Source of the DNA: Chrysemys picta bellii
Taxonomy: Eukaryota
Reading direction: 5' to 3'
Assembly: GCF_011386835.1 (NCBI RefSeq)
Contig: NC_088806.1
Span: 1,054,001 to 1,118,000, forward strand
Length of the DNA stretch: 64,000 nucleotides
The position numbers were made by a program, and so were the translations under genes. The first letter of the stretch is position 1, and each line of letters opens with the position of its first letter. Under the pieces are notes generated by a model. The model ran no database searches and was not told where the DNA came from. It saw only the letters and a program-made list of their open reading frames with translations. Positions 13,162-62,830 of the stretch are shown one piece after another.

Positions 13162-20340
<7,179 letters not shown>

Positions 20341-30627: not shown

Positions 30628-31826
30628 GGGGCCGGGCACGAACCGAAACTGCGCCCGCCGCGCCAGGCACCGGGAACTTTTGAGCCGCCCGGGGACTTTC
30701 CGAGCAGCGCGGGGCGGGGCGTCCTGGTCCCTGCCTGGGAACTCCCCCCCCGGCTCCCTGCAGCCCCCCCCCCGGCTCCCTGCAGCCCCCCCCCCGGCTC
30801 CAATCCCCCCCGGCTCCCTGCAAATCCCCCCGGCTCCAATCCCCCCCGCGGCTCCCTGCAGCCCCCCCCGGCTCCAACCCCCCCCCCCCCCCGGCTCCCT
30901 GCAGCCCCCCCCGACTCCAATCCCCCCCCGGCTCCAATCCCCCCCCCGGCTCCCTGCAGCCCCCCCCCGACTCCAACCCCCCCGGCTCCCTGCAGCCCCC
31001 CCCCCCCGTCTCCAACCCCCCCCCCCCCCGGCTCCCTGCAGCCCCCCCCCGACTCCAAACCCCCGGCTCGGGACAGGCCACCCCATGGCCCGTGGCCCAG
31101 GGAAGCCGGCGCCTTTCCCCGGCGGGGGACATGGCCCTGCCCCACCCGGGTCTTCGCACCTTGGCGTTCGCTGCGGGGAAACGCCGGGTTTGGGGGCGTT
31201 GTGCATCTCGCGGTTCCGTGTGAATTGGCCCTTGGGTTCGTTAAGAGCCGAATGGCTTTTGTGCCTCAGGTGGGGGCAGAAAAGTCACAGGAAAAGTGAC
31301 CCCCCCAAAAGACCCCAACGGATTTAAAGACAGTTCGGCTTTGCAGCCCGTGGGAACGTGGACGGGGGATCCGGGAGGGGAAACGGGATCTTGGTCTCGG
31401 TCGCTTGTTGGCTTTGCTCTAAATAGTCCCGGGGGGGGCTGGAGGGGGGGCTGTTGAGTTGTTTTTGTTGCATGTTCTCGCTTTTGTTTCCTGGGGCTTT
31501 TCTGTGACTAACACGGCTGCAGAAGTGGCTATTGGCCAGCTGGGGAGAGCGGCGAGAAAACGCGCCCTTGGGTGCATGGGGTTTGGAGCTCGGCAGCTGG
31601 GCCCCCCAATCTTCTCTCTAGCCCCCCTCTTTCCCCTCCCCCGGGAAGGGGCTGGAACCTGTTTCCCCCACAGCCTGACCGACTCCCTGCCTGGTGCGTG
31701 TGGGGGCAAAGAGACACCCTCATGGGGGCGAAGGGGGCTGGGGTTGGAGGCAGATTAGCAGAGACATTCTGGGGCGGGGTGGGAGCCAAAGGGGAGTTCG
31801 CAGGCCGGGTTGGTTTAAAGCGATTT

Positions 31827-33840: not shown

Positions 33841-34242
33841 GGGGCTGCAAAATCCGGCTTGAAAACCTCAACGTTCCTTGTGGTTTGCATTTTTCGTTCT
33901 CTTCCTGGAGAGCGGAGCCTTTGTCCCGTCCGGGAGCCGGGCCCACGCAGTAATCTCTACTTTGGTGCCGCTTTGGGCTGGCCCAGGGGCTTGGCCAGAG
34001 CGAAGCACGTTTATTGATGTGGCTGTAGATTTCTCCAGATGAACATTGCCGGGCTTGGACGAGCTTAGAAGATCTTCTGGCTCGGATACAGCCCTTCCTG
34101 TCTGGAGATCTCGAAGCACTTTATAAAGCAGGTGGGTCTCGTTAGCTCCACTTCACAGACAGGGAAACCGAGGCACGGAATGGCCCGTGAAAGCACACCT
34201 GTGTGCTCTACCCACTATCATTTTTTTTACCTTGTGACCCCC

Positions 34243-35357
34243 TGCGACATTATTGAGAGAATCTGTGTCCATCTGTTGCAACCACTGTTATATATTTGCA
34301 GCAGGTGCTGTACAAAGGTTGTCATGCGAGGTGTTTGTGGAGAGGTTGTGGTGTGCTGGGGGTGATTGTGCTGGGTGGGTGTGTATTGGTTTTGTAGTTG
34401 ACGGTAGGAATGTTGGCTCTGCGCTCGTATCTCAAGGTGTGTGACTCTAAGTACCCACAGTGAAGCACTGGGGTGGCTTCTTGAGAAAGGAATTTGCAAG
34501 TTAAGGGCCCAATCCAGAAACACTTAACGGACAATGGATCTTGGGAGACTCCAATCCAGATAAGAAATCTACCTGGGGGTGTTCAGGATGGCGTGTGGGC
34601 AGTGGCTACCACCTGTAAAAACTGAGTCACGCCTGGACATGTGACTGGCCCATGTGACTCCAAACTCCATTTTGCTGTAATTTTCCACGGTAAGTACAAA
34701 GAAGTGTTCTTACACCTGGAGGAGACTATAAAAGGCTGATGCCTCATCTCCATCTTGTCTTCAATCCTGCTTCTCACCTCTGGAGGGACTTTGCTACAAA
34801 CGGAAGCTCTGAACAAAGGACTGAGGACCCATCCCGGCTGGGGATGTATTCCAGAGACTTGATTTGAACCTGCAGTTTATTCTATCACTGCTACGAGCCT
34901 GAACCAAGAACTTTGCCATTACTGTATGTAACTGATTCCATGTAACCAGTTCTAGCTCTCAGTGATATCTTTTTTCTTTTTATGAATAAACCTTTCAATT
35001 GTAGATTCTAAGGATTGGCTTGTGGGGAAGATCTGACTTGTCTATCGACCTGGGTCTGGGGCTTGGTCCTTTGGGATCAGGAGAACCTTTTCCTTTTACT
35101 GGGGTATTGGTTTTCATAACCATTCGTCACCATAACGAGTGGCGCTGGTGGTGATACTGGGAAACTGGAGTGTCTGAGGGAATTGCTGGTGTGACGTGTG
35201 GTTCGCCAGTGGGGTGAGACCAAAGTCCTCTCTGTCTGGCTGGTTTGGTGCTGGGTGTGCAAAGGACCCGAGCCTTGGGCGGGGTCTGCCCTGCTCTGAG
35301 CGATTTGTCCTTGGATTGAGGCTCTCAGTTGGGTCCACCAGAACCAGCATCATTACC
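34243..35357 (+). mobile_element. Solo LTR-like element, copy 2
   Basis: Counterpart of 11082-12178. Confidence 0.65.
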
Positions 35358-36338
35358 GCCCCCTTACCCCTGTCTGTGACCCCCAATCCCCAGAGCAGGC
35401 CCGGGAGGGAGGGATGCGGACAGGGGTGAAGGGACCCAGGCCTCCATTGTGCTGGGGGGTGGGGGGAGTTTGTCCAAACCCGGTTGCGTTTAAAACGAAG
35501 CGAGGAACGGAAGCATTGTGGTTTCCTGTCGCGCTGGGCCAGACGCTGCGAGCTCTGGAAAGCTGCCAAGGCCGGGTTAGGAGCCATGGGCATAGGACAG
35601 AGGTTGTTAGCAGCAGCAGGGGCCTGCAGCAGGGAAACTGAGGCACACAAACCAGTGAGAGTCACATGCCACACAACATGGGGAACCCCCCCCCCCCCGG
35701 TCACATGGCATCCTGCGTGCCTCGGACTCAGCCGATCCCCCCGCCCGGGCGCCGGGTCAGGGGTGGGAGAGGAATGTGCAGCTTTTGGAAACTTTCCCAT
35801 GACCTGTCCCCGGAGGAATGCCACGGCCTGGGGGATGCGGGGGAGACCTGCCAGCTGGCCGGGCAGCGACCATTAATGCCCGGAAGCCGTGGGGAGCAGG
35901 AACTGGAGGCCGAGTGCCTGGGGGCCAGGCTGGGAGTCTGTCCTGCGACTCTGAACATTACGATAGAGGCAGATTTTTAAAAAACACTTAAACCCCCTGT
36001 CCCGGACCCCCATATTCCCCCCCCCACGTGCTCTCTCTCGGCTCCACACAGCCCTGGGGGGGTCTCCCTGCAATGCGACGGCCCCTCTTGGGGACCTGCT
36101 GTCTCTCCCAGGCCCCAGCCCTGCCTGGGCCCGCACCTCTGAGCCCCCCACAGCCGGGCCCCCTTGCTCTGGGGCGGGGGACATGCGGGGCGAAGAAGCC
36201 CCCCGGGGCCAGGGATGTATGCGCATGGCCCTTTAAATATCACTGTGATGTCATCGCTGGCGCTACTGTGACATCACGGCGGGCAGCTCCTCCCCCTGTG
36301 CCCACCCACCCGCCTCTCCCGCTGCTGGGGGGCAGCCA

Positions 36339-39300
36339 ATGGCAGCGTGGCGACTGCTGGAGCTCCTCCTCCTTGGGGCCACGGGCATCTGGGCGACAGG
36401 TGGGTGCCGGGGGGGATGGACAGGTGCCCCTGCCCCAATCATACCCTCCCCCCCTGCCCTGGAAGGGGGACGGGTCCTTCCCTACAGTCGATGTCACAGG
36501 GCAACCCCTCCCCCTCCCAGCCTTTGATGGCGTGTGATGTCACGGAGGCCTCTGATGTCACACATGTGGCGCTGTGATGTCATCCAGTGAACGGGAACAG
36601 GGGGGTGGAGATGTGGCATGTGAAGGGCTGGGAGCCCGGACGCCTGGGTTCTCTCCCCGGCGCTGGGAGGGGAGTGGGGGTTGGTGGGTCAGAGCAGGGG
36701 GGGCTGGGAGCCAGGACTCCTGGGTTCTCTCCCCGGCTCTGGGAGGGGAGTGGGGGTTGGTGGGTCAGAGCAAAGGGGCTGGTAGCCAGGACTCCTGGGT
36801 TCTCTCCCCGGCTCTGGGAGGGGAGTGGGGGCTGGCAGGGAGAGGGGGGGCAAATGTCTCTAACGGGGGGCTCTGTCTCCCCAGGCTGTGGCTTCCGGCC
36901 GGGATACGACAGCCCCAGCCTCTCCCCCGCACCCCGCATCATCGGGGGGCAGAAAAGCCGCCCTGGGGAATGGCCCTGGGTTGTGAGTCTCCAGACCCAA
37001 GGGCACCACTTCTGTGGGGGGGAGCGTCATACACTCCTGGTGGGTGCTGAGCGCAGCCCACTGCTTCCACGACACCCGGTAAGGGGGTTGCGGGTCGGGA
37101 GTGAGGGGCACTGGCAGAGCTGGGGGGGGGGGCAGGGCTGGGCTGGCAGGGGCTGCGGGTCGGGAGTGAGGGGCACCGGCAGAGCTGGGGGGGGCAGGGC
37201 CGGACTGGCAGGGGCTGCGGGTCGGGAGTGAGGGGCACCGGCAGAGCTGGGGGACAGGGCTGGGCTGGCAGGGGCTGCGGGTCGGGAGTGAGGGGCACCG
37301 GCAGAGCTGGGGGGCAGGACTGAGATAGCAGGGGGCTGCGGGTCGGGAGTGAGGGGCACCGGCAGAGCTGGGGGGCAGGGCTGGGCCAGCAGGGGCTGCG
37401 GGTCGGGAGTGAGGGGCACCGGCAGAGCTGGGGGGGCAGGGCTGGGCTGGCAGGGGCTGCGGGTCGGGAGTGAGGGGCACCGGCAGAGCTGGGGGGGGCA
37501 GGGCCGGGCTAGCAGGGGCTGTGGGTCGGAAGTGAGGGGCACCGGCAGAGCTGGGGGGCAGGGCTGGGCCAGCGGGGGCTGTGGGTCGGGAGTGAGGGGT
37601 GCCATCCCTGTGCCCAGGCCCCAGGACGTGACGGTGGCGGCCGGCAGCGTGACCCTGGGCATGGGCGGCGTCACCCGGCGGGTTCGACGGATCCTGTCCC
37701 ACCCCAGCTACAGCCGCAGCACCTACGACTCGGACCTGGCCCTGCTGCTGCTGAGCCGCCCCCTGCCCCCGGGCCGGGGTCTCGGCCTCGTCTGCCTCCC
37801 CGGGGAGCCGGACGACGAGGACGACGGGCAGTGGGGCAGCTGCTATGTGGCCGGGTGGGGCACCACGGAGTACGGTGAGCGGGGCCACCTGGTGGGCCTG
37901 AGCCGGGGGGAGCAGGGGGCGGGGCTGGGAGGGGGCTGGGGAGGAGGGGGTCTCTCCAGGGGTGTCTGGCTGGGGGGGGTCAGGCCGGAGGGGGTGGGGC
38001 TGATGGCTGGGGGGGCCCATGGCTGGGGGGGGTCTCTCTGGGGGTGGTCTGGCCGGGGCTGCACCGTCGTCTCTCGCAGGGCAGGAGACGGTGTCGGGAG
38101 TGCTGCAGGGGGCTGGCAGGGCCCATGGCTGGGGGGAATCTGGTCGCGGGGGGGTCCGGCAGGGGGTTCCGGCAGGGGGGTCCGGCCGGGCTGCAGCGTC
38201 GTCTCTCGCAGGGCAGGAGACGGTGTCGGGGGCGCTGCGGGAGGCTGGCGTGCGGATCGTCGATTGGCTGCGCTGCATGTGGTGGATGGGGGCCCTGACC
38301 CAAAACATGGTCTGCGCCGGGCACGAGGAGGGCGGCCGGGACGCCTGCCAGGTGGGGACCCCCCCAGCCCCTCCCCCGCCCAGGCCCCCCCATTCCTCCC
38401 AGCCCCTCCCCCAAACCCCACCTCTGCCCCACCCCAGGGCGCAGGCCCCTCCCACAGGGCCCCAAACTCCCCCCCGTCATCCCCCCGACACCCTCATGCC
38501 CTGGACAGGGGACCCCCCGTGGTTCGTCCTTCGCTCCCCCGTCTGCCCCGTTCCCGCGGCGGCTTCTGGAGGTTCCCCTCCATGCCGGGGTCGCGCGTTC
38601 GCTGCCTCCCTCCGCGTCTGTCCTTCCTCTGTCACTTCCTTCGCTTCCTCCGCGTCTGTTCTTCCTCCTTCACTTCCTCCCTCCTCCGCTTCCTCCGTTG
38701 CATCCTCCTTCCTTTGCTTCCTCCGTATCTGTCCTTCCTCCGTCACTTCCTCCTTCCTCCACTTCCTTCATTCACTGCCTCCTCTGCGTCTTTCCTCCTT
38801 CCTCCGTCGCTTCCTCCTTCCTCTGCTTCCTCCGTCGCTTCCTTCCTTCCTCCACTTCCTTCAATCGCTGCCTCCGCCGCGTCTGTCCTCCCTCAGTCGC
38901 TTCCTTCCTTCCTCCACTTCCTTCAATCGCTGCCTCCGCCGCGTCTGTCCTTCCTCCGTCGCTTCCTCCTTCGCTTCCTCCCTCCTCCGCTTCCTCCGCC
39001 GATTCCTTCCTTCCTCTGTCAATTCCTCCGTCGCTTCCTCCTTCGCTTCCTTCCTCCGTCGCTTCCTCCGTCGCTTCCTTCCTCCGTCGCTTCCTTCCTC
39101 CGTCGCTTCCTTCCTTCCTCCACTTCCTTCAATCGCTGCCTCCTCCATGTCTGTCCTTCCTCCGTCGCTTCCTTTATTCGCTGACTCCTCCGCATCACTC
39201 CTCCTTCCTCCTCCACTTCCTTCCTCCCTCGTTTCCTTCCCCCCTTGCTTCCTCCGGCGCCTCCTTCGCTTCATCCACGTCTCTCCTTCTCCGCTTCCTT

Positions 39301-40314
39301 CATTCGCTGCCTCCTCCGCATCTGTCATTCTTCCTCCTTCGCTTCCTTCATCCGTCGCTTCCTTCCTCTACCACTTCCTCTGCATCTGTCCTCCTCTGCT
39401 TCCTTCATTGGCTGCCTCCTCCGGGTCTGTCCTTCCTCCATCGCTTCCTCCTCTGCGTCTCCTCCTTTCTTCCTCCTTCCTCCCTCGTGTCTTTCCTCCT
39501 TCCTCTGTCGCTTCCTCTGCTTCCTCCCTGGTTGGTTTGTTGGTTCTCGCTGGCGCGTTCTTGCGTTTTCTCCTTCGTCCATTCAGCCCGCGTCTCGTTC
39601 CTTCGCTTTCTCGGTGACCTGGCTTCTCCTTCGATGCTCGTCCATTGTCTCCATTTCTCCTTCGTTTCTTCGTTCGTTTTCTCCTTCTGTCCCCGACTCC
39701 TTTTCTCGTCAGTTCGTTCGTGGCCTCGTTTTTCTCGTTGGTTTGTTTTCTCGCCTGTTCATTCATTGAGTCATTTTCTCCATTTTTCTCCCCCTTGTCA
39801 ATTTGTTAATTGACTCGTCTGCTCGTTCGTCGCCTCGTTCTCTCGTTCGTTTCCTGCTTTTCTCGCTCGTTGAGTCTCGTCCTCATTTGCTTCTTTCCTC
39901 GCTCAATAGTTGATTCATTTCTTCCTTTGTTCGGCCTCTCGGTTTCTTGCTGGTTCGTTTTCCTCCTTCGTTGGCTGACTCGTTCTCTCGTTCCAGGGTG
40001 ACAGCGGGGGGCCCCTGCAGTGCCAGGCCCCCCAGGGCTCCCCCTGGTACCAGGTGGGCGTCGTGAGCTGGGGCCGGGGCTGCGGGAGGCGCCAGCGTCC
40101 GGGCGTCTACACCCGCGTGGCCAACTACCGGGCCTGGATGGATGAGGCCACCGCAGCAGTGGGGAGACCCCTGAGGCCCCAGAAGGCCACCCCCACCAGG
40201 CTGGGCTCCGCCCCCCAAAAGACAGAGCCGGAGGTCGCCGGAGGCCCCCGCCCCTGCCCGTGGCGGCCCCTGGGCCTTTCCCTGGGGCTGGCTCTGGGGA
40301 GGTGGCTGGGCTGA
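36339..40314 (+). pseudogene. Serine protease copy 2; +1 frameshift in exon 2 as assembled
   Basis: Exons 36339-36399, 36885-37078, 37618-37874, 38212-38351 and 39997-40314. G7 instead of G6 at 37016-37022 (..[10 protein letters not shown]..). Triad codons are intact. Three amino-acid differences from copy 1 were seen (M/T, A/D, S/R). Confidence 0.75.
38600..39960. repeat. Pyrimidine-rich satellite, copy 2 (about 1.4 kb)
   Basis: Same start and end sequences as 15250-19990 but about 3.3 kb shorter. Confidence 0.93.
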
Positions 40315-41848
40315 GCGAGACACAAGGCATGCTGGGAAGAGGACAGAGCCGCCGCCGCCAAGGATTGTGGGAGGGGATGGCTACGTTGGCCACTGAGATT
40401 GGCCAACACTTTGGGAGGGAGGGGCAGGAGGGCGAAGGGGCATTAAATATTATGTAGAGAAGCGGAGAGCGAACTGTTCACTGGGAATAGGGGACCCAGG
40501 CAACCAGGAGAGCAGAGCAGGACATTCGCCCCTGGGGAGGGGAGATGGGACCCAGGCGTCCGGGAGAGCAGAGCAGGACGCTCGCCTCTGGGGAGGGGAG
40601 ATGGGACCCAGGCATCTGGGACGGCAGCGGAGGGTGCTCGCCTCTGGGGAGGGGAGATGGGACCCAGGCATCCGGGACGGCAGCGGAGGGTGCTTGCCTC
40701 TGGGGAGGGGAGATGGGACCCAGGCATCCGGGACGGCAGCGGAGGGTGCTCGCCTCTGGGGAGGGGAGATGGGACCCAGGCATCCGGGACGGCAGCGGAG
40801 GGCGCTCACCCCTGGGAAGGGGACATGGGAACCAGGTGTCCAGGAGAGCAGAGCAGGACGCTCGCCCCTGGAGAGGGGAGATGGGACCCAGGCATCCAGG
40901 AAAGCAGAGCAGGACGCTCGCCTCTGGGGAGGGGAGATGGGACCCAGGCATCCGGGACGGCAGCGGAGGGTGTTCGCCTCTGGGAGGGGAGATGGGACCC
41001 AGGCATCCGGGACGGCAGCGGAGGGTGTTCGCCTCTGGGGAGGGGAGATGGGACCCAGGCATCCGGGACGGCAGCGGAGGGCGCTCACCCCTGGGAAGGG
41101 GACATGGGAACCAGGCATCCGGGAGAGCAGAGCAGGGCGCTCATCCTAGGGGGACGGTGGGGAGGGGAGATGGGGCCCAGGTGTCCGGGACAGCAGCGCA
41201 GGGTGCTCGCCCCTGGGGAGGGGAGATGGGACCCAGGCATCCGGGATGGCAGCGCAGGGCACTCGCCCCTGGGGCGCCCCGGGGGAGTGGGGCGGGATCT
41301 CAGGGTGGTGGGAGCTGGGGCAGGGCGGGGGAGGGTATCCCTGGGGAGCTGGAACCCCGTGATGTCACAGTGGAATCTCGGGGCGCCCGGGGTATTTACC
41401 TTCAAATCAGCTGGAGGAAGCAGGTACGGGGGGGGAGCTGGGGAGATGGGGGGAGGGCTGGATTGGGTTATTATAGGGGGTGGGGGGCAGCAGTGGGGGG
41501 GGGGACGGGCAGATCTGGGGGTCCAGGGGGTTGGGGTCCAGGAATCTGGGAGGACTTTACTCAGGAGTGCCGGGGGGGGTGCTAGGATGGGGGTCAAGGA
41601 CAGGGATGCAGGAGGTGGGCTGGGGAACGGGGGGCTAGGGGGTGTCTCAGCCCCCCAGGAACGAATTCAGAACGGGGTACTGAGTTGGGGGGTAATGGGG
41701 GGGCGCAGGGTGGAGGTTTGGGGGCTCCGTGCTCTAACCGGCCACATCCCCCCAGGATGGAGTTCGTGACGGGGTACCGGGGTGGAGGTTTGGGGGTGCG
41801 GGGTGGAGGTTTGGGGGGCTCCCTGCTCTAACCCCCCCGCCCCCCAGG

Positions 41849-44800
41849 ATGGAGTTCGTGACAGGGTACCGGGCTGAGGTGCTGGACCTGGCCGAGTTGC
41901 TGCTCGCCTGGCACCGGTCCCAGGCCGGGGGGCCCCGGGACAGGCAGCACCAGCGGCGCCAGGAGGGGCACGTCCGGCGCCTGCCCCCCGACCCCGCCCT
42001 CTGGCTGCTGCACCTGCTGCCAACTCCCGGCTGGGGCTGGCGCTGCCGGGGGGGGTCCGGGGGGAGCCCCGGGGGCGGCTCTGCGGGGAGGACGCCCTGC
42101 AACTGCGGGACCTGCAGCGGGCGGTCACCTTCCTGAGCCTGGACGAGGAGGACGAGGGGCCAGAGACAGGTACCCCCCAGCCCCCCACCCCCCTCGGGGC
42201 TCCCCTGTCTGCCCCCTTTCCCCTGGCCCCCCATCCCGATGGGGCTCCCCCGTCTGCCCCCCTCCCCTGCCTGTCCCCGTGGGGCTCCCCTGCCTGCCCC
42301 TCTCTCCCCAGCCTCCTGTCCCACATGGGGCTCCCCCATCTGCCCCCTCCTCTGCCTGGGCCCCTCTCCCCAGCCCCCCGCCCCTCTCTGGGCTTCCCCG
42401 TCTGCCCCCCTCCCCTGCCTGCCCCTGCCTCCATCCCACCACCAGGCCCCCCATCCCCGTGGAGCTCCCCCGTCTGCCCCCTCCCCTGCCCCATCTGCCC
42501 CCCCGTTCCTGTGGGGTTTCCTGCCTGGCCCCCTATCCCCAACCCTGCCAGACACCCCCTATTCCCCAGGCACCCCCCTGCCCATCCCCCTATCTTCCCA
42601 CCCCTGCTGGGCCCCTCCCTATCCCCTGCCCCACACCCAGGGCTCTGAACCCCGCCCTCCGCCGGTCTCACCTCTGCCCCCCTCCCCCCAGGCCAGGCCC
42701 TGGTGCATGTGGAGCGCCTCCTGCTGGTTACAGACGAGCACGGCACGGTGATGGGCCTGGATTTCCAGCTGGGGGCCGGGGCCCCGCCCAAGCCGTCCAC
42801 ACCCCCCCCACTGGAGCAGCTGGCGTTCAGTCTGCTCTGCCAGAGCATGGCCTGTCCAATGGGCGGGGGGGAGCCCCGCCGGCCCCGGCTGCTGGCCGTG
42901 GGGGACCCCACCTTGCACAAGTGAGTGTGAGCGGGCGGGCGGCGGAGGGGTTGCGTGCCCATCCCCCACCTCACTGACCCCTCCCCCTTGCCTCTCCCCA
43001 CAGGTCACTGGAGCCCCTGCTGCCCCGGCTGGGGGTCAGACTGAGCCTGGGCCCCATGAGGGGCTGGGGGCCGAAACCCACCTTCACCTTGCCCTCCATG
43101 CGCGTGCGAGCCTGTCACGTGTGCAAGAGACATGGGTTCCACGGGCGGCTGGTGCCGTGGTGAGCGTGGGGTGGTGGTGGCGGGACCCTGTAGCTCCCCG
43201 GGGTGACCTTTGCCCGCCCCCCTGGCCTGTGCCCGGGCCAGGGTTTGAGGGGGCCGCGGGCTAGCTCTGAGCCCCCCTATCTGTCCCGTCCCCCCACAGC
43301 CAGCAGTGCCGGGCCGTGCTGTACTGCTCCGAGCGGTGCCGGGCGGCCGACTGGGCCCGCAGCCCCGAGGACGCGGCCCACCGGGCCTGGTGCCCCCGCA
43401 TGGCCGGGTACATGGCCCGCGCCCGCCAGCTGGCCGACCTGCCCTTCACCTTCGCCGCCGGTGAGCCCTGGGCAGGGGAACGTGGCGGGGGGGGCAGGGG
43501 GACGGGGCCGTAGTGCACTGGGGGTGGGGTGCAGGGGGACATGGGGGGCCCTGGGCAGGGGCAGCTCTGGGTGGGGGGGTTGCCAGGTGGGGGGCTGGGC
43601 AGGGAGAGGCCACTGGGGGGCACCAGGTGTTGTACTTAAAGTACTGCACAGGATCTTTTCCGGGGGAATAAGGCAGAACGCCACATTTATTAGTGATACA
43701 TGTATTCATTAACACTGTATCATACGCATATATTACACTTACACTCACACACAAACACAAACACACTCCGTCTTGTTGTTACCAACTAGCTGCTCCCCTT
43801 AACTTCACTGGCCAGGTGAGTTAGATGGGGGAGGGGGTGGAGCCGGGCTTCTGCCGATCCGGATCGATGCTCCCATGTTGACAAGACGAGACCCGGGGTC
43901 CTCTGCAAGACACCTCACTTTTATAGCAGCTTTTCTCTTATGCAAATCTAGACCAGATTCAAACTCTGTGTCTGTGTCCATTGGTCCTTTGTGCTGCTTT
44001 CTTTTGAGTGTTGTCCCAATGCTGCAAAGAGGGTGTTTCCAAAAGAAGGTGCTTGCTTCTAACCCCCCAGGCCGTCAGTATGTCTGATTGTCTTTCATGA
44101 GCCCACTTGACACGTTTTATTGTCCTTGGGTCTGGCTCCCAGCCCCTCTCCAACAGTTGAGGCTGTCTGGAGGTGCTGCCTTCCATGCCTTGCTCATCCA
44201 CACCTCATTCATTCAACAGGGCAATTGATTAAGAGTGGGGGGGGGGGGAGAGCTCTTGTTCTACTGCTAGCAAAAAGAAAATTTTCTTCTATCTTATTCT
44301 ATCCTTAGGGGCTATAATATTATACCAAGGGCAATGCAAAGTTTCTAAATGAGGCTTTGATACAAAGTCCCATGAAAACAGAGGTCACACGTGGGTAGAC
44401 CCACCACAAGGTTATATGAAGAGGCGCAATGTAAAGTCATATGAAAATTATCAGAGATTGATCTACACAGGCAGGGGGCACTGGGGCAGGGGAAGGGGGG
44501 CTCTCGGTGGGGGGGGCTGGGCAGGGAAGGGGGCACTGGGCAGGGGGTGCTGGGGCAGGGGGTGCTGGGGCAGGGGGGCTCTCGGTGGGGGGGCTGGGCA
44601 GGGAAGGGGGCACCAGGCAGGGGGCGCTGGGGCAGGGGAAAGGAAGGGGGCATGGGGCAGGAGGCATTGGGGCACGGGAAGGGGGGGCTCCGGGTGGGAA
44701 ATGTGGGGGTGCACAGAGCTGGGGTTTATCGGGGTGTCCCGGCCCCCCATTTCCCTTGCAGAGGTGACCAGCGACGGGTTCAACAGGGAGGGGTTCCTGG

Positions 44801-47800
44801 CCGCCCGGGGGCTGACGCGGGGGTACTGGGCCCACGAGAGCATGCTGGTCCGGGCCCCCGACTATGGCGTGGGGCTGGGGGGCCAGAAGGACTGGAGACC
44901 CGGCCTGCTGCAGAGCGGTGAGCATGGGGGGCCGGGGGCCTGTCCCCTCTGGGGGCGCCGGCTCCTGTCCCCACCATAACCCCACCTTTCCCTCCCTCCC
45001 GCCCAGGTAACCCCTTCGAAGCACTGAGGCTGGAGGGGGGGGCGGCTCTGCCCCCCACCTCCCCGGAGCCCCCTGCACCCAGGACCTATTTCAGTGAGAT
45101 GGGGGAGGGGCGGGTTATAGCTCGGGGGGGCGGGGCCTGGCAGCTGGGGGGAGGGGCCAATGGCAGCTGGGGGTGGTGCGGTCCCAGCTCTGGGGGAGGG
45201 GGAGGAGCCAGTCACAGCTCGTCGGGGGCGCTCCCATCGGGGGGGGGCCGGTCCAGGGGGGCCGGGGAGGAGGGGCCGGTCCCGGGGGGGGGCCGGTCCC
45301 ATGGGGAGGGGCCGGTCCCATGGGGGGGGGAAGGAGGGGTCGGTCCCGGGGGGGGGGGCGGTCCCGTGGGGAGGGGCCGGTCCCGGGGGGGGCTGACCCC
45401 CGTGTCCCCCCAGGCTCGTGGCGCGAGTACTACGCGTGGCGGGGGCTCCCGCTGGGCTCCCCCTGGCGGCGCTGCTCAGTTACCCCCTGAGCGTCTATTA
45501 CATCGTCACCCAGCTCGTCCCCCGGCACTGTGAGTGGGGGGCTCGGGGGGCGGGGGGGGTCGGCAGTGTGAGTGGGGGGGTACGGGGGGCGGGGGGGCCC
45601 GGGGGGCGGGGGGGGCCCCGGCACTGAGAGTGAGGGGAGTCCGGGGGGGCGGGGGGGGGTCGGCAGTGTGAGTGGGGGGGCACGGGGGGGGCGGGGGACC
45701 CCGGCACTGTGAGTTGGGGGGGGGCCCGGGGGGCGGGGGACCCCGGCACTGAGAGTGGGGGGGGGCCCGGGGGGCGGGGGACCCCGGCACTGTGAGTGGG
45801 AGGGATCCGGGGGGCGGGGGGGGTCGGCACTGAGAGTGGGGGGGGCCCGGGGGGCGGGGGGGCCCAGCACTGAGAGTGAGGGGAGTCCGGGGGGCGGGGG
45901 GGGTCGGCAGTGTGAGTGGGGGGGGGCCGGGGGGCGGGGGGGCCCGGCACTGAGAGTGAGGGGAGTCCGGGGGGCAGGGGGGTCGGCAGTGTGAGTGGGG
46001 GGGCACGGGGGGCGGGGGACCCCGGCACTGAGAGAGAGGGGAGTCCGGGGGGCGGGGGGGGGTCAGCAGTGTGAGTGGGGGGGCACAGGGGGCGGGGGAC
46101 CCGGCACTGAGAGAGAGGGGAGTCTGGGGGTCGGGGGGGGTCGGCAGTGTGAGTGGGGGGGTACGGGGGGCGAGGGACCCTGGCACTGTGAGTGGGAGGG
46201 ATCCGGGGGGCAGGGGGACCCCGGCACTGTGAGTGGGGCCCGGGGGGGCTGGGAGGCGGAGGTCACCGTCTGGGCAGGGGTGGGGGAGCCCCAGTCCTGG
46301 AAGGAGGGTCTGGGGACTGGGGGGGTCCCCTGCCCCCTTCTGACCCCCCCATTGCTCTGCCCCCCACCCCCAGTCCCGGAGCTGAACATCCTGAACAAAC
46401 AGTCGCTGCGGATTCACATCGTGGAGACAGGGAAGGAATCGGACATGGCCCCCCTCTTCTGGGTGCGCGGGGGTCGCCATAGGGCGCTGTGGGGCAGGGC
46501 TGGGCTCTGGTGGGTATGGGGGCAGGGGGCGCCGTGGGGCAGGGCTGGGCTCTGGTGGGTATGGGGGCGCCGTGGGGCAGGGCTGGGCTCTGGTGGGTAT
46601 GGGGGAGCAGGGGGTGCCGTGGGGCAGGGCTGTGCTCTGGTGGGTATGGGGGGGCAGGGAGCGCCGTGGGGCAGGGCTGGGCTCTGGTGGGTATGGGGGA
46701 GCAGGGGGTGCCGTGGGGCAGGGCTGGGCTCTGGTGGGTATGGGGAGCAGGGAGCGCCGTGGGGCAGGGCTGTGCTCTGGTGAGCATAGGGGGGCACCGT
46801 GGGGCTGTGTGGGGCTTGCCGTGCGCATGGGGGGGCAGTGGCAGACATCCCCCCTCGGAGGGCAGGTTCAGAGCAGGCCCCATCTGTGACCCCCCCCTCC
46901 CCTTTGGGCCACCAGGAGCTGTCGGTGCTGCTGCCCCACGTGTCGCTGGAGCTGCTGTTCGTGGGGGCGTGTTGCCCCCCGAGGCCGACGGGCAGCAGGT
47001 CCTGCTGCAGAGAACGGTGAGGGGGGGGCCATGGGGGCGGGAGGAGGGGGAGCCCCAAGCCTCAACCCCCCCATGGCTGATTCCCCCCGTCTCTCCCCCG
47101 CCCCCAGGAGGCACAGGGGGTGCGCATCTGGCCCGGCCCCGCCCCCAAGGCCAAGGGAGGTCGGGGGGGGCTGCAGCTGAAATTCTGCGCCCAGCCCACC
47201 CCCCTGCTGCCAGGCCCCAAACCCGACCTGGTCATCGGTGAGTCCTCCGGGGGGGCCCTGGCTGGGGGGGGGGGGAGTCTGGGGGGTGGGGCACAGGGGG
47301 GCAGGGCACAGGGAAGGGAGGGGTACCCTGGGATGCTGTTGGGGGGGGAGGGGCTCAGGCCAGGGAGGGGGACCCTGGGGGGCTGTTGGGGGGGAGGGGC
47401 CCAATCTGGGGGCCCTGGGGGGGCTGTGTGGCAGGGAGGGGAGAGGGGGCTTTCTAGGGGGGACACCCGGGAAACCCCAATGCATGGGGGTGGCACAGGC
47501 CGGGGTGGAGGAGGGCTGACAGTGAGGGGAGGGGTTCCTCGAGGGAGGAGGGGGGTTCCCCCGGGGGGTCTCCCCGTTTGTGGCAGACCCCTGAGGCCCC
47601 CCCCTGTTATTTCTCAGGGTTCAATTCCGGCTTTGCACTGAAGGACACGTGGCTCAGCGCCCTGCCCCGGCTGCAGGTGGGAGCCCCTGGCCCCCCCGGG
47701 TCCCCCCAAACCCTCCCTCCCCCACTGCACCCGGGCCCCCCTGTGCCCCCCAAACCCCCCCAACCGCCCCTCTGAACCCCCAACCTCCCGGCCCTCTGGT

Positions 47801-55300: not shown

Positions 55301-58278
55301 GAGCTGGGTAAATACCCGGTTTGGGGGGCACCCAGGGAGCTGGGTATATACCCGGTTTGGGGGCGCCCCGGGAGCTGGGTAAATACCCGGTTTGTGGCAC
55401 CTGGGGAGCTGGGTAAATACCCGGTTTGGGGGTGCCCAGGGAGCTGGGTAAATACCCGGTTTGTGGCACCCGGGGAGCTGGATAACTACCCAGTTTGGGG
55501 CGCCCGGGGAGGTGGGTAACTACCCGGTTTGTGGTGCCCGGGGAGCTGGGTAAATACCCGGTTTGCGGGGCGCCTGGGGAGCTGGGTAACTACCCGGTTT
55601 GGGGGCACCCGGGGAGCTGGGTAAATACCTGGCTTGCAGGATGGCCCGGGGAGCTGGGTAACTACCCGGTTTGGGGGGCGCCCGGGGAGCTGGGTAAATA
55701 CCTGGTTTGGGACTCCGGGGGAGCTGGGTAACTAACCGGTTTGGGGGACGCCCGGGGAGCTGGGTAAGTACCCGGTTTGGGGGGCGCCCAGACAGCTGGG
55801 TAAATACTCGGTTTGGGGCGCGCCCAGGGAACTGGGTAAATACCCAGTTTGGGGCGCTGGGGGAGCTGGGTAAATACCTGGCTTGGGGGGCACCCGGGTA
55901 GCTGAGTAACTACCCAGTTTGGGGGGTGCCCGGGGAGCTGGATAACTACCCAGTTTGGGGGGGTGCCCAGACAGCTGGGTAAATACCCGGTTTGGGTTGG
56001 CGCCCAGGGAGCTGGGTAAATACCTGGTTTGGGGGTGCCCGGGGAGCTGGGTAAATACCTGGTTTGGAGGGCACCCGGGGAGCTGCGTAAATACCCGGTT
56101 TGGGGGGTGCCCGGAGAGCTGGGTAAATACCCGGTTTGGGGGGCGCCTGGGGAGGTGGGTAACTACCCGGTTTGGGGGGCACCCGGGGAGCTGGGTAACT
56201 ACCTGGTTTGGGGAGCGCCCGGGGAGCTGGGTAACTACCTGGTTTTGGGGGGGCCGGGGTAACTACCCGGTTTGGGGGGCGCCCAGGGAGCTGGGTAACT
56301 ACCCGGTTTGGGGGGCGCCCGGGGAGCTGGGTAAATACCCAGTTTGGGGGGCGCCTGGGGAGCTGGGTAAATACCTGGTTTGTGGCACCCGGGGAACTGG
56401 GTAAATACTCGGTTTGGGGGGCGCCCGGGGAGCTGGGTAAATACCCGGTTTGGGGGGCGCCCAGGGAGCTGGGTAACTAACCGGTTTGCGGGGCACCCGC
56501 GGAGCTGGGTAACTAACCGGTTTGGGGGTGCCCAGGGAGCTGGGTAACTAACCGGTTTGCGGGGCACCTGCGGAGCTGGGTAACTAACCGGTTTGCGGGG
56601 CGCCCGCGGAGCTTGGTAACTACCCGGTTTGGGGGGCGCCCGCGGAGCTGGGTAACTACCCGGTTTGGGGGGCGCCCAGGGAGGTGGGTAACTACTCGGT
56701 TTGGGGGGTGCCCGGGGAGGTGGGTAACTACCCGGTTTGGGGGGTGCCCGGGGAGGTGGGTAACTACCCGGTTTGGGGGGGCGCCCAGGGAGGTGGGTAA
56801 CTACTCGGTTTGGGGGGTGCCCGGGGAGGTGGGTAACTACCCGGTTTGGGGGGCGCCCAGGCAGGTGGGTAACTACTCGGTTTGGGGGGTGCCCGGGGAG
56901 GTGGGTAAATACCTGGTTTGGGGGGCGCCCGGGGAGCTGGGTAAGTACCCGGTTTGTGGCGCCCGGGGAGCTGGGTAAATACTCGGTTTGGGGGGTTCCG
57001 GGGTAACTACCCGGTTTGGGGGCACCCGGGGAGCTGGGTAAATACCCGGTTTGGGGGGCACCCAGGGAGGTGGGTAACTACTCGGTTTGGGGGGTGCCCG
57101 GGGAGGTGGGTAACTACCCGGTTTGTGGCACCCGGGGAGGTGGGTAACTACTCGGTTTGGGGGGTGCCTGGGGAGATGGGTAACTACTCGGTTTGGGGGG
57201 TGCCTGGGGAGATGGGTAACTACTCGGTTTGGGGGGCACCCGGGGAGCTGGGTAACTAACCGGTTTGCGGGGCGCCCGCGGAGCTTGGTAACTACCCGGT
57301 TTGGGGGGCGCCCGCGGAGCTTGGTAACTACCCGGTTTGGGGGGCACCCGCGGAGCTGGGTAACTACCCGGTTTGGGGGGCGCCCAGGGAGGTGGGTAAC
57401 TACTCGGTTTGGGGGGTACCCGGGGAGGTGGGTAAATACCCGGTTTGGGGGGTGCCCAGGGAGGTGGGTAACTACTCGGTTTGGGGGGTGCCTGGGGAGG
57501 TGGGTAACTACCCGGTTTGGGGGGCGCCCGGGGAGGTGGGTAACTACTCGGTTTGGGGGGTGCCCGGGGAGGTGGGTAACTACCCGGTTTGGGGGGCGCC
57601 CAGGGAGTTGGGTAACTACTCGGTTTGGGGGGTGCCCGGGGAGGTGGGTAAATACCCGGTTTGGGGGGCACCCGGGGAGCTGGGTAAATACCCGGTTTGG
57701 GGGGCGCCCGGGGAGCTGGGTAAGTACCCGGTTTGTGGCGCCCGGGGAGCTGGGTAAGTACCCGGTTTGTGTCACCCGGGGAGCTGGGTAAATACTCGGT
57801 TTGGGGGGCGCCCGGGGAGCTGGGTAACTACCCAGCTGGGGCATGTGGGGAACTGGGTAAATACCTGGTGACTAACTTCCTGGATCTCTGGTTCCCCTCC
57901 CCCAGGGCGAAGGTCTCTGAGCTGCCAATGGACCCCGAAAACCCGGTTTCCGGGGGGCTCTGTCACTCGTTGTCACCCTCCCATCCATCTGTCCATTGCG
58001 GGGGCCTGTGGGATGCCTGGGCCCTTTATGGCGGGGGCTCAAGCCGGGCCCCCCAGACCGCGTTCTCATCCACCACTGCCCCCAGACCTCCCAGCTTGTA
58101 CCTAATTAAAGAGCCCCCCTGCTTCTGCCTGGCACGTGTGGGTTTCATTGGGAGCATGATTTGGGGTGGGGCAGTTGGGAGGAGGGGGGCTGCGGGTGGG
58201 GGTCCAGACTCTTAGGGGTCTGACCTCCCCCCCCAGGTCTTGGAGGAGGGGCTGATGCGGAGGTGGGAGCCATTCTAA
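49379..58278 (+). CDS. TM4SF5: Transmembrane 4 L six family member 5 (about 208 aa; last exon tentative)
   Basis: Exons 49379-49549 ([35 protein letters not shown]..), 52103-52183 ([27 protein letters not shown]), 52315-52454 (MLRSVFCS..) and 54161-54353 (..[29 protein letters not shown]) join in frame. Tentative terminal exon 58237-58278 ([13 protein letters not shown]). Confidence 0.93.
49680..50525. repeat. C/T-rich degenerate repeat (CATCTGTCC/CTGTCCCTC) in TM4SF5 intron 1
   Basis: Recurrent CATCTG and CTGTCC motifs; low-complexity ORFs. Confidence 0.85.
52600..53720. mobile_element. Putative non-autonomous DNA-transposon-derived segment with multiple internal inverted repeats in TM4SF5 intron 3
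   Basis: Repeated inverted pairs CCCTTTAAATAGCCCCC / GGGGGCTATTTAAAGGG at 53315-53620; AT-rich head at 52660-52800. Boundaries are approximate. Confidence 0.45.
52849..52972. mobile_element. 124-bp MITE with TAGGGTGACCAGA / TCTGGTCAC(G)CTA terminal inverted repeats (hAT-Blackjack/MER81-like)
   Basis: 13-bp TIRs with one mismatch; no clean TSD seen. Confidence 0.6.
54400..57860. repeat. 3.45-kb minisatellite, unit about 35 bp (CCCGGGGAGCTGGGTAAATACCCGGTTTGGGGGGCG), with an internal palindrome
   Basis: Roughly 95-100 units; most contain GGGTA-NN-TACCC or a close variant. Confidence 0.97.
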
Positions 58279-58684
58279 GGGGGGCAGAGCCCTATGGAAG
58301 GGGCTGGGGGCCCAGGAGAGGGGGCAGAGCTGGGGGGCTCAGTGAAGGGGGCTACTCCTCCCACTGGCCCTTGATGGGGTGCAACTCTGCCTCCCATGCC
58401 CCCCCCAGATTCCCTCTTGCCCCCCAAGCCAGGCAGTCCATGCCCTGGAGCCAGGTGGGAGCCCCCGCCTTCTAGAGGGGACAGGCCCCTGCCCTATTCC
58501 CCACCCCCCTGAGCCAGGCAGTCTGTCTGGCGGGGGGGGGTGAGGGAATTGGATGGGAGGGTTGGATCTCTAATTCCCACCCTCTGCCCCCCCTTAGCTG
58601 GGAGGGAGCGACATCCCCCCACCCCATAGCCAGGGTGGTGTCCGGCCATTAAGATGCCGGTCAGCTCAGGTCCAAAGTAAGTCG

Positions 58685-58690
58685 TTTATT
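58685..58690 (-). terminator. VMO1 polyadenylation signal AATAAA
   Basis: TTTATT on +, 24 nt beyond the stop codon at 58714. Confidence 0.8.
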
Positions 58691-58713
58691 GGGGGGGGTC
58701 ACACAGACAGGGG

Positions 58714-61128
58714 CTAGCGGGGGAGCAGCTGGGAGCAGGGTTCATGGGGGGGCGGGGAGTGGGAGTAGCAGGGATTGGGGGGCAGGGGGCAGTGGGGCGT
58801 GGTCAGCGCCCACCGGACGACCTGGTTTGGGGGTTCTGCGGTGAGGTGCGAGGGGTCCGGGGGGGTGTGCGGGGTGTCTGCGGTGGGGTGGTGGGGGTCT
58901 GGGTTGTGGTTGGGGTCTGGGTTGTGGTGATGGGGGGCTTGGTTGAGGTGGGGGTCTGGGTTGTGGAGGTAGGGGGCTGCGTTGAGGTGATGGGCTCGGT
59001 TGACGTGGGGGTCTGGGTTGAGGTGGGGGTCTGGGTTGTGGAGGTAGGGGGCTGCGCTGAGGTGATGGGGGGCTCGGTTGACGTGGGGGTCTGGGTTGAG
59101 GTGATGGGGGGCTCGGTTGAGGTGGGGGTCTGGGTTGTGGAGGTGGGGGGCTGTGTTGAGGTGGGGGTCTGGGTTGTGGAGGTAGGGGGCTGCGTTGTGA
59201 TGGGGGGCTGGGTTGAGGTGGGGGGCTGGGTTGTGGAGGTAGGGGGCTGCGTTGAGGTGATGGGGGGCTCGGTTGATGTGGGGGGCTGGGTTGAGGTGAT
59301 GGGGGGCTCGGTTGATGTGGGGGTCTGGGTTGTGGAGGTGGGGGGCTGCGTTGAGGTGATGGGGGGCTCGGTTGAGGTGGGGGACTGGGTTGTGGAGGTG
59401 GGGGGCTGCGTTGAGGTGGGGGACTGGGTTGTGGAGGTGGGGGGCTGCGTTGAGGTGATGGGGGGCTCGGTTGAGGTGGGGGTCTGGGTTGTGGAGGTGG
59501 GGGGCTGCGTTGAGGTGGGGGGACTGGGTTGTGGAGGTAGGGGGCACGGCTGTGGTGGTGGTCAGGGTTTCAGGCCTGCAGCATCTGAAGTAGACATCGT
59601 TCAGGGCCGTGTCATCCCCTTTGCCCTGGGGGGCCTCCACTTTGGTGGCGATGGTGCAGATGCCCCGCGGGCCGCAGGAGCAGCTCTGGGGGCCCCAGTT
59701 GCCCCGGCGCAGCCCGTCCCCCCTCAGCTCCGCCCCGCCCGTGCAGACGAACTCGATGTTGTTGGCGGCCGTGTCGTCCTTGAGGCCCCGGCAGGGCTCC
59801 ACCCGCAGCCGGAACTGGGTCAGCCGCTGCCCCGAGGGGCATTTCTTCACTAGACCCCACGAGCCCCACCTGGGAGGAGAGAACGGGTCAGCTGGGTACG
59901 GCCCACAGGGGGTGCTGCCTTCCCCCCAACCTCTGCCACCCTGGGCTGGGAGCTGCTGCCCTAGTGTCCCACCGCTACCACCACCACGATCCCACTTCTG
60001 ACACCACTAACCCACTGTCAATACCACGATCCCACCCCTGCCCCCCACTAACCCACTGCCAATACCACGATCCCACCACTAACACCAGTAACCCGCTGTC
60101 AATACTATGATCCCACCCCTGCCCTCCAACCAGCTGTCAATACCACGATCCCACTTTTACCACCACTAACCCACTGCTGTCACTGACGTCCCGCCATCGA
60201 TGCCACCCTCCCATCTCCGCCACCACTAACCCACTGTCAATACCATGATCCCACCCCTGCCCCCACTAACCCACTGCCAATACCGCGATCCCATCTTCGC
60301 CACCACTAACCCACTGCCAATACCACGATCCCACCACTGCCACCACTAACCCACTGCTGACACTGACGTCCCACCATTGATGCCACCCTCCCATCTCTGC
60401 CACCGACCCCAGCTCTCTTGGTGACACCCCTTTTCCACTTGTGCGCATGGAGCCTGGTGCCCCCTCTGCCAGGTGCCCGCACCCTCCGTTGGGCCCCTCC
60501 CCACAGTACTCACGGCCCCACGTTGGACTGGATGGTGCTGCCGTCAGAGCAGAGCAGCCGGATCCCGTTCAGCGCCGTGTCATCCCCGGCGAGCTGGGGC
60601 AGCTCCACCTGCAACGGGGTATTGGGGGGGAACAAGCCTGGGCATTAGAGACTGGTCCCCCATCACTTCAGTGCAAGGAGATGGGGGCCAGAGGGGTGTG
60701 GGGAGGGGGAAATTGAGCAGAGGGGCTCAGGACTGTGGGGTTGGGGAGGAGGGCAGGGGCAGGGGGAGCTGGGCTGGGGAAGGGGGAAGGGATGTGGGAG
60801 GGTGAAGGGTGCAGGGAGTGGGGCAGGGATGTGGGAGGGTGAAGGGGGCAGGGAGTGGGGCAGGGGGGAGCTGAGCTGGGGAAGGGGGCAGGGGATGGGG
60901 GGAGGGTGAAGGGGGCAGGGAGTGGGGCAGGGGGGAGCCGGGCTGCCGAGTGTGAATCTTTACCTTCAGGGAGAACCCAATGGCGAAGCTGTTGCCGGGG
61001 CAGGACTGTTCTGCGCCCCACGTGCCCCATATCCCCCCGTTGCTAACGTGGATCTTGGTGTGGCCCCATGCGCCCCACAGGCAGCAGCCGAGCAGAAGGC
61101 CGAGCGTGGCGTGCAGGGAGCTGTCCAT
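58714..61128 (-). CDS. VMO1: Vitelline membrane outer layer protein 1 homolog with a long repetitive C-terminal extension (471 aa as assembled)
   Basis: Exons 61128-60964 (signal peptide plus IHVSNGGIWGTWG..CP..FAIGFSLK), 60608-60514 (VELPQLAGDDTALNGIRLLCSDGSTIQSNVG) and 59869-58714 (WGSWG..CPSG..FRLRVEP..DDTAANNIEFVC..WG..C..GIC.I.TKVE.PQG.GDDTALNDVYFRCC plus a 287-aa tail). The three DDTA.N repeats are diagnostic of the VMO1 beta-prism. TATAAAA on the minus strand at 61199-61193. Confidence 0.93.
58880..59545 (-). repeat. Coding tandem repeat in VMO1 exon 3 (units of 18, 21 and 39 nt)
   Basis: A single reading frame is held across about 640 nt of repeat, with only substitutions and codon-sized indels. 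Confidence 0.9.
59960..60410. repeat. Degenerate repeat in VMO1 intron 2 (CCACTAACCCACTG.CAATACCACGATCCCAC)
   Basis: About 10 imperfect units. Confidence 0.8.
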
Positions 61129-62830
61129 GGCTGGGTAGGCGAGCGGAGGAAGCCAGCAGCAGATGTGCAGCTCCTGGCACGGGGCAGGGGTGTTTTATAC
61201 CCGGGGGTGTGGGCTGGGCTGGGTTCCAGCCTGTGTGGGCAGTGCAAAGGGGTCGGTCTCGCCTTCTCTCGGCATGGGGTCAGGGCTATAATTAGGTTAA
61301 TCCTGCCCAGACTATCCCGGGGCGCATGATGCAAGGTTCCTACGCCACCCACCTAGGGTTCTGCTGCCTCATCGGCCCAAAACTCCCAGAGCAAACACGT
61401 AATGTGACAACACCTCTGGCCTCACGCCAAACGATTCAACCATGCCCGCTGACACCGGGTGCCTTTATGGGGCCAGCATCCCACTGTTACCACTTTGGAC
61501 GTGGTATCCCACCGCTAACACCACTATGCTGTTACGGTGCCAGGATCCCACTGTTAACACTTCCGTGGGAAATAAGGCGTGGAAACGAGGGAGAGGCCGG
61601 GTCCCCGGTTCAGAGCGATGTGGATCACAACCCAGTACTGTGGTTTGAATGCGGCTAAATGCCACCGTACACAACACGGAACGAGGCGCGTCAGCCGTAC
61701 ACGGGCCGGGGAGTCTCTCCTGGGGAGCAGCAACTCTGAAGCAGATTTGGGGGGCGGGGAGGGTAATCAGCGGAACGTGAGCTCCCGGGGCGACGCTGTG
61801 ACCAGAAGGGCGAATGCCATCCCGGGCTGCGTAAGCGGGAATCTCGCGTAGGGGCAGAGAGGCGATTTCACTGCTGGATCGGGCCCAGACGCTGCCCACA
61901 GTTCCGGCCGGAGGGTGATTCCATCGCAGAGGGGTCAGAGAGGAGCCAGGAGAAGGATTAAAAACCCTGCCTGCGAGTGAGAGACTCCAGGAGCTCAGTT
62001 AGCGTAACGAAGAGGCGGCGAAGGGGTGACGGATCCCGGGCTGTAAGTACCGACGCGGGGAGCGAATGTTTCACTAGCAGAGGCAGGTCTAACCCGGTCG
62101 AGGGCCGGGAGTTGGAACCAGACGAATTCGGACTGGAAACAAGATGGAAAACGTCTAACAGTGAGGGGGGCTTGTCCCCATGGGCCCGTCTGAGCTGGGG
62201 AAGGGCGGTGAGGCCAGGCAGCGTAGATTCGCCACGGGGTTAAGGCAGCTAGTGGCGGCTGGGATGAACCAGGCTGGAGTCGGACTTTCCTGGCAGAAGC
62301 AATGACGCTTGTTTTCTGTGGCCTCCAGGAGGCCTGTCTCGGTTTGGCTCCATGTGGTCGTGGCCGGGGCACCAGCAGGGCTTCAAAGCCCATCTGCTCA
62401 CGTCCAGGCCTGCAGCCCCTACCGCTCATTATGAGTTAATTGTCTGTGTACCTCTGGGGTCATTTCCAGAGCCAGGCAGCCGACGGGGTGACCTCCATCG
62501 ATGTCTCCCTCCCAGGGGGGGTCTTCACTCCCATGCACCCGCTGGGTGGTAATGCATAATAAATTGGGGAAACTGAGTCACACGGCTAGTTCACTTGGAA
62601 ATTTCTGCAATCCCTGCGTTCTCTACGCCTAACATCTTATCTCCCCTTTTGGATGGCAGCTGCCCCACCTTCCCGTTTCTCAGAAACACCCAGTCCACCC
62701 AGATATCCGTGTCATTCCTTATAATTATAGGCCTGTTTGTCTGAAACAGATCCAGGGCGAGATAATGGAGCGGCTGATATGGGGACTGAATTAATAAACA
62801 ATTAAGAGGGCGTAATGCAATGAATTCCAC

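Follow-up and report, generated by a model that had tools for sequence, protein, structure and literature searches.

The minus strand of a 64,000-nucleotide (nt) stretch of the Chrysemys picta bellii genome (positions 1,054,001 to 1,118,000 of contig NC_088806.1, assembly GCF_011386835.1; hereafter the window, in whose numbering coordinates are given unless a locus is named) carries a VMO1 gene with a third exon that extends into a tandem array (58890-59545). With a probability that we put at roughly 0.85, this gene is transcribed and encodes a soluble, mucin-like protein of 441 amino acids (aa), in which a signal-like N-terminus and a complete VOMI domain are followed by a 257-aa tail dominated by threonine, serine and proline, and the histidine-rich 471-aa form spelled out by the assembly arises from a single surplus C. 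This surplus base, in the C6 run at 59517-59522 (G6 on the forward strand), stems either from an error of assembly or from a rare allele. Such a protein would be secreted, its tail would be densely O-glycosylated into a stiff, hydrated stalk, and the whole might act as a small soluble, non-gel-forming mucin with a head formed by the carbohydrate- and lysozyme/ovomucin-binding VMO1 domain.

The reading frame of the tail was established with contigs of four public runs (X1, X2, X5 and X12) aligned to 58600-61200. No run is recorded as RNA; the RNA nature of X2 and X12 was deduced from their intron-skipping contigs, X12 also having a contig inside intron 2, such that unspliced RNA or DNA must be present in it too, and X1 and X5 were taken as DNA runs. 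A 669-nt contig of X2 joins 61156-60962 to 60606-60511 and 59866-59488, and since it skips both GT..AG introns (355 and 644 nt) it represents spliced RNA. It shows 0 mismatches to the window and departs from it solely by the omission of one base at 59517, which places the Thr/Ser/Pro frame of the array in frame with VMO1. Two X1 contigs and one X5 contig likewise lack this base, and the longer run is found in no X2 contig, a second X2 contig at this site merely stopping at 59517 after a 30-letter overlap with the first; this end is read as a branching of the assembly graph. Further X2 contigs cover 59445-59517, 59329-59375, 59251-59319 and 58690-58970, the last of which ends at a minus-strand poly(A) signal (AATAAA, 58685-58690), and the X2 depth is nil at 58600-58686. 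As these contigs lie on the array with neither joints nor loose ends among them, the array belongs to the mature RNA. A VMO1 protein with a mucin-like Pro/Thr/Ser tail was the reading preferred in the earlier note on this DNA, which had proposed to fix the frame by accurate reads or cDNA across 59510-59580; the spliced contig, differing from the window by that one base alone, now does so in its favor, as does the use of the same frame in Emys and Mauremys (see below).

The organization of the array itself points to the same frame. After the terminal Cys-Cys codons of the VOMI domain (59583-59578) a stop is absent, and exon 3 runs on into the C/A-rich array, which spans about 650 bp with periods of 21, 39, 60 and 99 nt (Tandem Repeats Finder). 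The assembled frame encodes 471 aa, the last 287 being a tail in which Pro, His, Asn, Ala and Leu abound, and it ends at a TAG (58716-58714) that we judge to be unused. With one base of the run left out it comprises 441 aa, and the tail coding region (58806-59577) consists of the linker RPETLTTTTAVPP, about 30 units of the forms TSTQPP, TSTTQ(T/S)P and TSTEPPI, and an end in ..SSGGR ahead of a TGA (58805-58803). Both tails, along with the contrast between the C6 run and the C5 of its sister units, had been described in the earlier note and are reproduced here by inspection and translation. The linker already reads Thr/Ser/Pro units up to the C6 run, the point at which the assembly, one base over relative to the RNA, exits this frame. 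An open frame was rejected as evidence for coding, because the C/A-rich composition leaves all three frames of the array open. The phase of the units is a different matter: 23 of the 24 intervals between unit anchors are multiples of 3, the lone exception (22 nt) being the one that holds the C6 run, whereas a nearby non-coding 36-bp array (56000-57833) has only 13 of 20 intervals in phase and 7 off phase. This bears out the observation, made from the letters alone, that indels in the repeat are codon-sized, unlike those of a non-coding array. Were phase irrelevant, the 32 C-runs of 5 or 6 in the array should have produced small slips. Differences between units at the first, second and third codon positions of the Thr/Ser/Pro frame number 8, 1 and 12, a small sample, but one that shows the pattern of a coding frame.

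The gene that bears this tail has three exons, with GT..AG introns backed by the RNA contig. A TATA box (TATAAAA, 61193-61199, minus strand) can be read about 35-40 nt upstream of the start of the RNA contig at 61156. The coding part of exon 1 (60964-61128) opens with the ATG at 61128 and encodes the N-terminus, hydrophobic and signal-like, along with the first part of the VOMI domain, its RNA segment (61156-60962) being joined to that of exon 2; intron 1 (60609-60963, 355 nt) corresponds to the 355-nt joint in the X2 contig. Exon 2 (60514-60608) continues the VOMI domain in both the gene model and the RNA contig, and intron 2 (59870-60513, 644 nt), which corresponds to 644-nt joints in both X2 and X12, holds a 40-bp tandem array (59982-60357) detected by Tandem Repeats Finder. 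The VOMI part of exon 3 (59578-59869), with the Cys-Cys codons at its end, is delimited by the matches to Pfam and to the chicken structure. The 40-bp array of intron 2 has grown to about 2 kb in a Chrysemys paralog (about 10676-12829 in locus L002).

The head is a VMO1 domain: the Pfam VOMI profile (PF03762) matches the first 204 residues with an E-value of 2.4e-49 and 168.1 bits against a cut-off of 25, covering positions 1-167 of 167, and the chicken VMO-I structure (1VMO) is matched at 4.9e-46 by phmmer with all 8 of the chicken cysteines aligned, the residues behind the four disulfides of the beta-prism fold. The N-terminal 22 aa are hydrophobic and lie ahead of the point where mature chicken VMO-I aligns, which together suggests a secreted protein. 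The best protein matches are from Chrysemys picta bellii itself (92-95% identity) and from other turtles, which places the source among the emydid turtles, and tblastn recovered no second VMO1 copy in the window. The domain thus belongs to the VOMI family, while the architecture of the protein is a variant of the usual one: typical members are a single domain of about 180-200 aa which ends just past the Cys-Cys pair, while the protein of the window has 257 residues more.

The window protein also has two cysteines beyond the eight of chicken, one of which is shifted relative to the turtle paralogs. These paralogs have an additional pair of cysteines compared with chicken, in the contexts ..EPC.. 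and ..GRCWGKW.. (region 59690-59720, exon 3). In the window protein and in the Chrysemys model XP_008175664.1 the second of the pair is lost (LRRGNW), and a cysteine is gained 3 residues before a conserved one (QSCSC); the Mauremys 'mucin-2-like' protein has lost the second one with no replacement, leaving it with an odd number of cysteines. Such changes might allow disulfide-linked dimers.

Orthologs of the gene in other turtles were recognized by their position beside the same neighbours, namely a TM4SF gene (Pfam L6_membrane) and a ZMYND15-like gene, both of which were seen in the turtle loci. Human VMO1 lies beside TM4SF5 and ZMYND15, and the turtle gene occupies the position of VMO1 in mammals. 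The window from about 50 to 61 kb is colinear with the Emys orbicularis locus, including the 36-bp array and the L6_membrane gene, and the Emys protein (XP_065273430.1, 307 aa, 'VMO1-like') enters the Thr/Ser/Pro frame directly past the Cys-Cys pair and remains in it for 124 aa, with 18 of 18 unit intervals of its array in phase. In Mauremys mutica, the copy beside the L6_membrane and ZMYND15-like genes is annotated as 'mucin-2-like' (385 aa), an automatic label for a protein without MUC2 domains; its genomic frame yields a tail of about 215 aa with about 27 ITSAQPP units and an end in ..SSGGIVAGG.., all 17 of 17 intervals being in phase. The Emys and Mauremys proteins hence resemble that of the window in gene position by L6_membrane, in the VOMI domain and in the frame of the tail, and their units are related, with ITSTQPP in the window and Emys and ITSAQPP (Ala for one Thr) in Mauremys. 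Among the three, the window has the tail of greatest length and highest Thr content, that of Emys being cut to 124 aa by a TAG. The Gopherus evgoodei copy in the equivalent position has a tail of about 80 aa, which is in frame only in NCBI's model.

The end of the tail appears to be older than its repeats. In the Thr/Ser/Pro frame, both the window and Mauremys tails end in ..SSGG.., resembling the ends of the short-tailed (10-55 aa) paralogs of Chrysemys, Malaclemys and Emys, some of which terminate in ..SGG..GR. The loci of Chrysemys XP_008176032.1 and XP_065426534.1 and Malaclemys XP_053861786.1 are paralogs rather than the gene of the window, and were used for their short tails only. No array is present at the loci of Lepidochelys, Carettochelys and Emydura (the last beside L6_membrane). 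In Lepidochelys, VMO1 ends with Cys-Cys-Arg-Pro and a stop that takes the place of a Glu codon, and from the last VOMI motif to the poly(A) signal there are about 210 nt in both Lepidochelys and Emydura, as against about 930 nt in the window; in Carettochelys no poly(A) signal was found in the stretch read. The presence of arrays in the testudinoid copies and their absence from the outgroup loci indicate a testudinoid-specific expansion flanked by older in-frame sequence. The tail probably arose as a short Thr/Pro-rich C-terminal extension grew in testudinoid turtles, to lengths varying by species. The broader proposition, that the testudinoids (pond turtles, Asian pond turtles and tortoises) turned the VMO1 copy nearest TM4SF5 into a lineage-specific small mucin with a tail of up to 257 residues, we hold at about even odds. 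Long VMO1 proteins of Rhinophrynus, Ascaphus, Channa, Crotalus and Orchesella were considered and set aside, as they represent tandem VMO1 domains or fused models with no mucin tail.

Certain details of the individual copies may be recorded here. In Emys (11330-11710 in locus L001), about 50 in-phase Pro/Thr/Ser codons follow the single CAG-to-TAG change, which may represent a genuine truncation, a polymorphism or an erroneous base. In Gopherus (10576-10760 in locus L006), the frame is left at a C7 run and regained 78 nt later at a C5 run, and NCBI's model drops the intervening stretch; the copy also lacks two cysteines, one of the terminal ones and a conserved one elsewhere, and exon 1 is missing from its model. 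It may be decaying, or it may have suffered two homopolymer errors in assembly. In the Chrysemys paralog XP_008176032.1 (13229-14700 in locus L002), the array is broken after about 55 aa by about 1.2 kb of unrelated sequence, past which a degenerate fragment of exon 3 precedes the usual 3' end, suggesting an insertion or a rearrangement.

Several observations weigh against the interpretation of the gene as encoding a soluble mucin. The X1 and X5 DNA contigs that lack the surplus base could derive from paralogs and thus weigh less, and the middle of the array (about 58971-59250) falls outside the RNA contigs, such that further length errors are possible there. The Emys stop lies inside an otherwise in-phase array, which indicates loose constraint; Gopherus as assembled carries the +1 and -1 shifts; and the last ~25 residues of the tail are not conserved in frame between species. 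Further, the protein does not count as a classical mucin, as VWD, cysteine-knot and SEA domains are all absent from it. The earlier note had named a cDNA stop right after Cys-Cys-Arg and frame-breaking indels in orthologs among the findings that would speak against a translated tail. The RNA instead runs on into the array, and all unit intervals of Emys and Mauremys keep phase, while Gopherus as assembled carries its two shifts. However, given the loose constraint on its length and last residues, the tail may matter little. In its strongest form this becomes an alternative that we consider unlikely while giving it some weight, namely that the tail is translated yet functionless, a coding microsatellite that expands and shrinks neutrally behind a functional VMO1 rather than a selected mucin domain. 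The spread of lengths, from about 80 aa in Gopherus and 124 in Emys to about 215 in Mauremys and 257 in the window, with 30-55 aa in paralogs, is in keeping with this, as are the Emys nonsense codon with in-phase units beyond it and the Mauremys units in which Ala replaces a Thr of the window and lowers the Ser+Thr content; moreover, the gain or loss of whole units of 18 and 21 nt leaves the phase unchanged in any case. However, neutrality would lead one to expect phase-breaking indels in the 32 C-runs, and none is seen in three species, while the 36-bp array breaks phase in 7 of its 20 intervals. The second codon positions are nearly invariant among the units (1 difference versus 8 and 12 at the others), the Pro/Thr/Ser-rich composition has been kept across three turtle families, and accepted mucins vary in length as a rule (PMC1552070).

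The remaining alternatives concern what the gene produces. It is improbable that the C6 run is a real allele and that the sequenced animal makes the 287-aa His/Pro/Asn-rich tail, which might bind metals, from at least one chromosome. The assembly itself reads C6, homopolymers (of which the 32 C-runs of 5 or 6 are examples) are prone to mutation, the tail has withstood a nonsense codon in Emys and shifts of frame in Gopherus, and the absence of C6 from the contigs is weak evidence given that rare variants drop out of them. Against this, the sole RNA contig over the site reads C5 while matching the window everywhere else, the DNA contigs there (two of X1, one of X5) are all without the base as well, the C6 interval is the single out-of-phase one among 24, and Emys and Mauremys use the Thr/Ser/Pro frame. 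With the longer run found in no RNA contig, the His-rich frame fails as the general reading of the gene, a C6 allele in the assembled individual keeping a small probability. It is also distinctly improbable that a third intron, with its donor at about 59547 and its acceptor at 58275, routinely takes the array out of the RNA, giving a 214-aa protein like the old Chrysemys model XP_008175664.1, with the RNA of the tail being minor or unprocessed. That model is 95% identical to the window over the 204-aa query, and its last exon (58212-58274, minus strand) is placed by a tblastn match of 100% over its last 20 aa (58274-58215) downstream of an acceptor with a pyrimidine tract and AG. This exon has no RNA support: the X2 contig from which both introns are gone crosses the putative donor unbroken to 59488, and the X2 contigs on the array end at the AATAAA (58690-58685), about 400 nt short of it. 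The newer NCBI models of relatives extend into the array, and XP_008175664.1 could be, by conjecture, a detour of the gene predictor around the frame shift. Finally, the array would be a 3' untranslated region if a base missing near 59572 were restored to bring about a stop past Cys-Cys-Arg, a possibility raised in the earlier note whose probability we consider close to nil. The TGA at 59572-59570 is indeed present, one frame off, and sea turtles end with Cys-Cys-Arg-Pro and a stop; however, the RNA contig equals the window over 59866-59518 with no base missing, which refutes this explanation for the animal behind X2, and the sea-turtle stop substitutes for a Glu codon and has no array after it.

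The preferred reading, a VMO1 head with a Thr/Ser/Pro tail, may be placed among known mucins using the features listed by Pajic et al. 2022 (PMC9417175): more than 20% Thr+Ser, repeats within an exonic domain, clustering of Pro, Thr and Ser, and more than 4% predicted O-glycosylation sites. The 257-aa tail is composed of 38.5% Thr, 24.5% Pro and 14% Ser, with 135 Ser/Thr residues; hence, Thr+Ser amount to 52.5% of the tail and 36% of the whole 441-aa protein. The array is contained in exon 3, with the RNA contig leading from the VOMI part into it, and Pro+Thr+Ser account for 77% of the tail, reaching 81 residues in the richest 100-aa segment. The protein thereby qualifies on the first three of the four features, and from its composition the tail would be expected to carry O-glycans. 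Pfam searches with the window protein, both tail translations (Thr/Ser/Pro and His-rich) and the relatives found no VWD, CysD, cysteine-knot or SEA domain, VOMI being the only domain recovered and neither tail translation matching any. With the gel-forming mucins (MUC2, MUC5AC and MUC6/ovomucin) the protein shares a Pro/Thr/Ser tandem-repeat domain in one large exon (PMC1552070), but it is missing their VWD, CysD and cysteine-knot domains and thus lacks the means of forming disulfide-linked polymers, in keeping with a small soluble mucin rather than a gel-former.

A closer parallel is offered by the orphan mucins, such as rodent Muc10, derived from PROL1, and MUC7, in which a secreted non-mucin has gained Pro/Thr/Ser repeats in one exon in one lineage, likewise with no VWD, cysteine-knot or SEA domain and with a variable number of repeats (PMC9417175). 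However, the mammalian SCPP locus supplied their precursors, which are unstructured proline-rich proteins, whereas the precursor in the present case is a folded, disulfide-bonded, sugar-binding domain of turtles. Chicken VMO-I (PDB 1VMO) and human VMO1 resemble the window protein in the full-length VOMI domain, the 8 chicken cysteines and the look of a secreted protein, but canonical VMO1 ends 1-2 residues past the Cys-Cys pair, where the window protein adds 257 Pro/Thr/Ser-rich residues. Canonical VMO1 is reported not to be glycosylated (PMC9989928). The term 'mucinization' has been described for mammalian proline-rich proteins, with VMO1 unmentioned there (PMC9417175), and we found no paper on a VMO1 protein with a mucin tail among the literature on the turtle, mucin/tear and ovomucin topics. 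The automatic annotations of Emys and Mauremys do hold such proteins; as far as found, the class is present in databases yet undescribed in the literature.

Mucin domains, with their high Ser/Thr and Pro content, become densely O-glycosylated, extended and hydrated (PMC1552070, PMC9417175). VMO1 in turn binds strongly to ovomucin in the hen's egg and binds lysozyme, stabilizing the tear film in humans and camels (PMC9989928); it also binds chito-oligosaccharides and heparin, although its physiological role is still called uncertain (PMC9363672). Because the head binds ovomucin, lysozyme, chito-oligosaccharides and heparin, a role in glycan-rich gels is plausible, and a VMO1 with its own mucin stalk could plausibly function in egg coats, oviduct fluid, tears or mucus. 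The natural fusion of VMO1 to such a stalk would likewise point to VMO1 working within the glycan-rich gels of egg coats, tears and mucus. If true, the turtle protein would bring its own mucin stalk, whereas bird VMO1 binds ovomucin non-covalently, and the gene would constitute a case of 'mucinization' beyond mammals which started from a folded sugar-binding domain as opposed to an unstructured proline-rich protein. The origin of mucins through repeats gained within an exon (PMC9417175) would then extend to reptiles and include a folded precursor. The turtle tails of 0, 80, 124, 215 and 257 residues would further provide a natural series on the effect of a mucin tail upon a lectin-like domain. 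In terms of annotation, one surplus base in a C-run was sufficient to create a false His-rich protein, and the older model spliced the array away; the gene should stand as a 441-aa VMO1 with a Pro/Thr/Ser tail.

Some further features of the window and of the neighbouring genes were noted. The 36-bp array at 56000-57833 (about 52 copies) sits directly downstream of the VMO1 gene, contains long spurious open reading frames on both strands, and is also found in Emys in the matching place, where it falls inside the gene model for L6_membrane (TM4SF). Two copies of a block of about 19 kb occur in the window (6278-24927 and 30001-45157) at 88-97% identity, flanking a gap of 500 Ns at 25008-25507, and may reflect a real segmental duplication or a haplotype copy retained in the assembly. 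In Carettochelys (14668-19086 in locus L008), a gene model fuses a trypsin domain to the ZMYND15-like gene (Pfam Trypsin, zf-MYND and MSS51_C).

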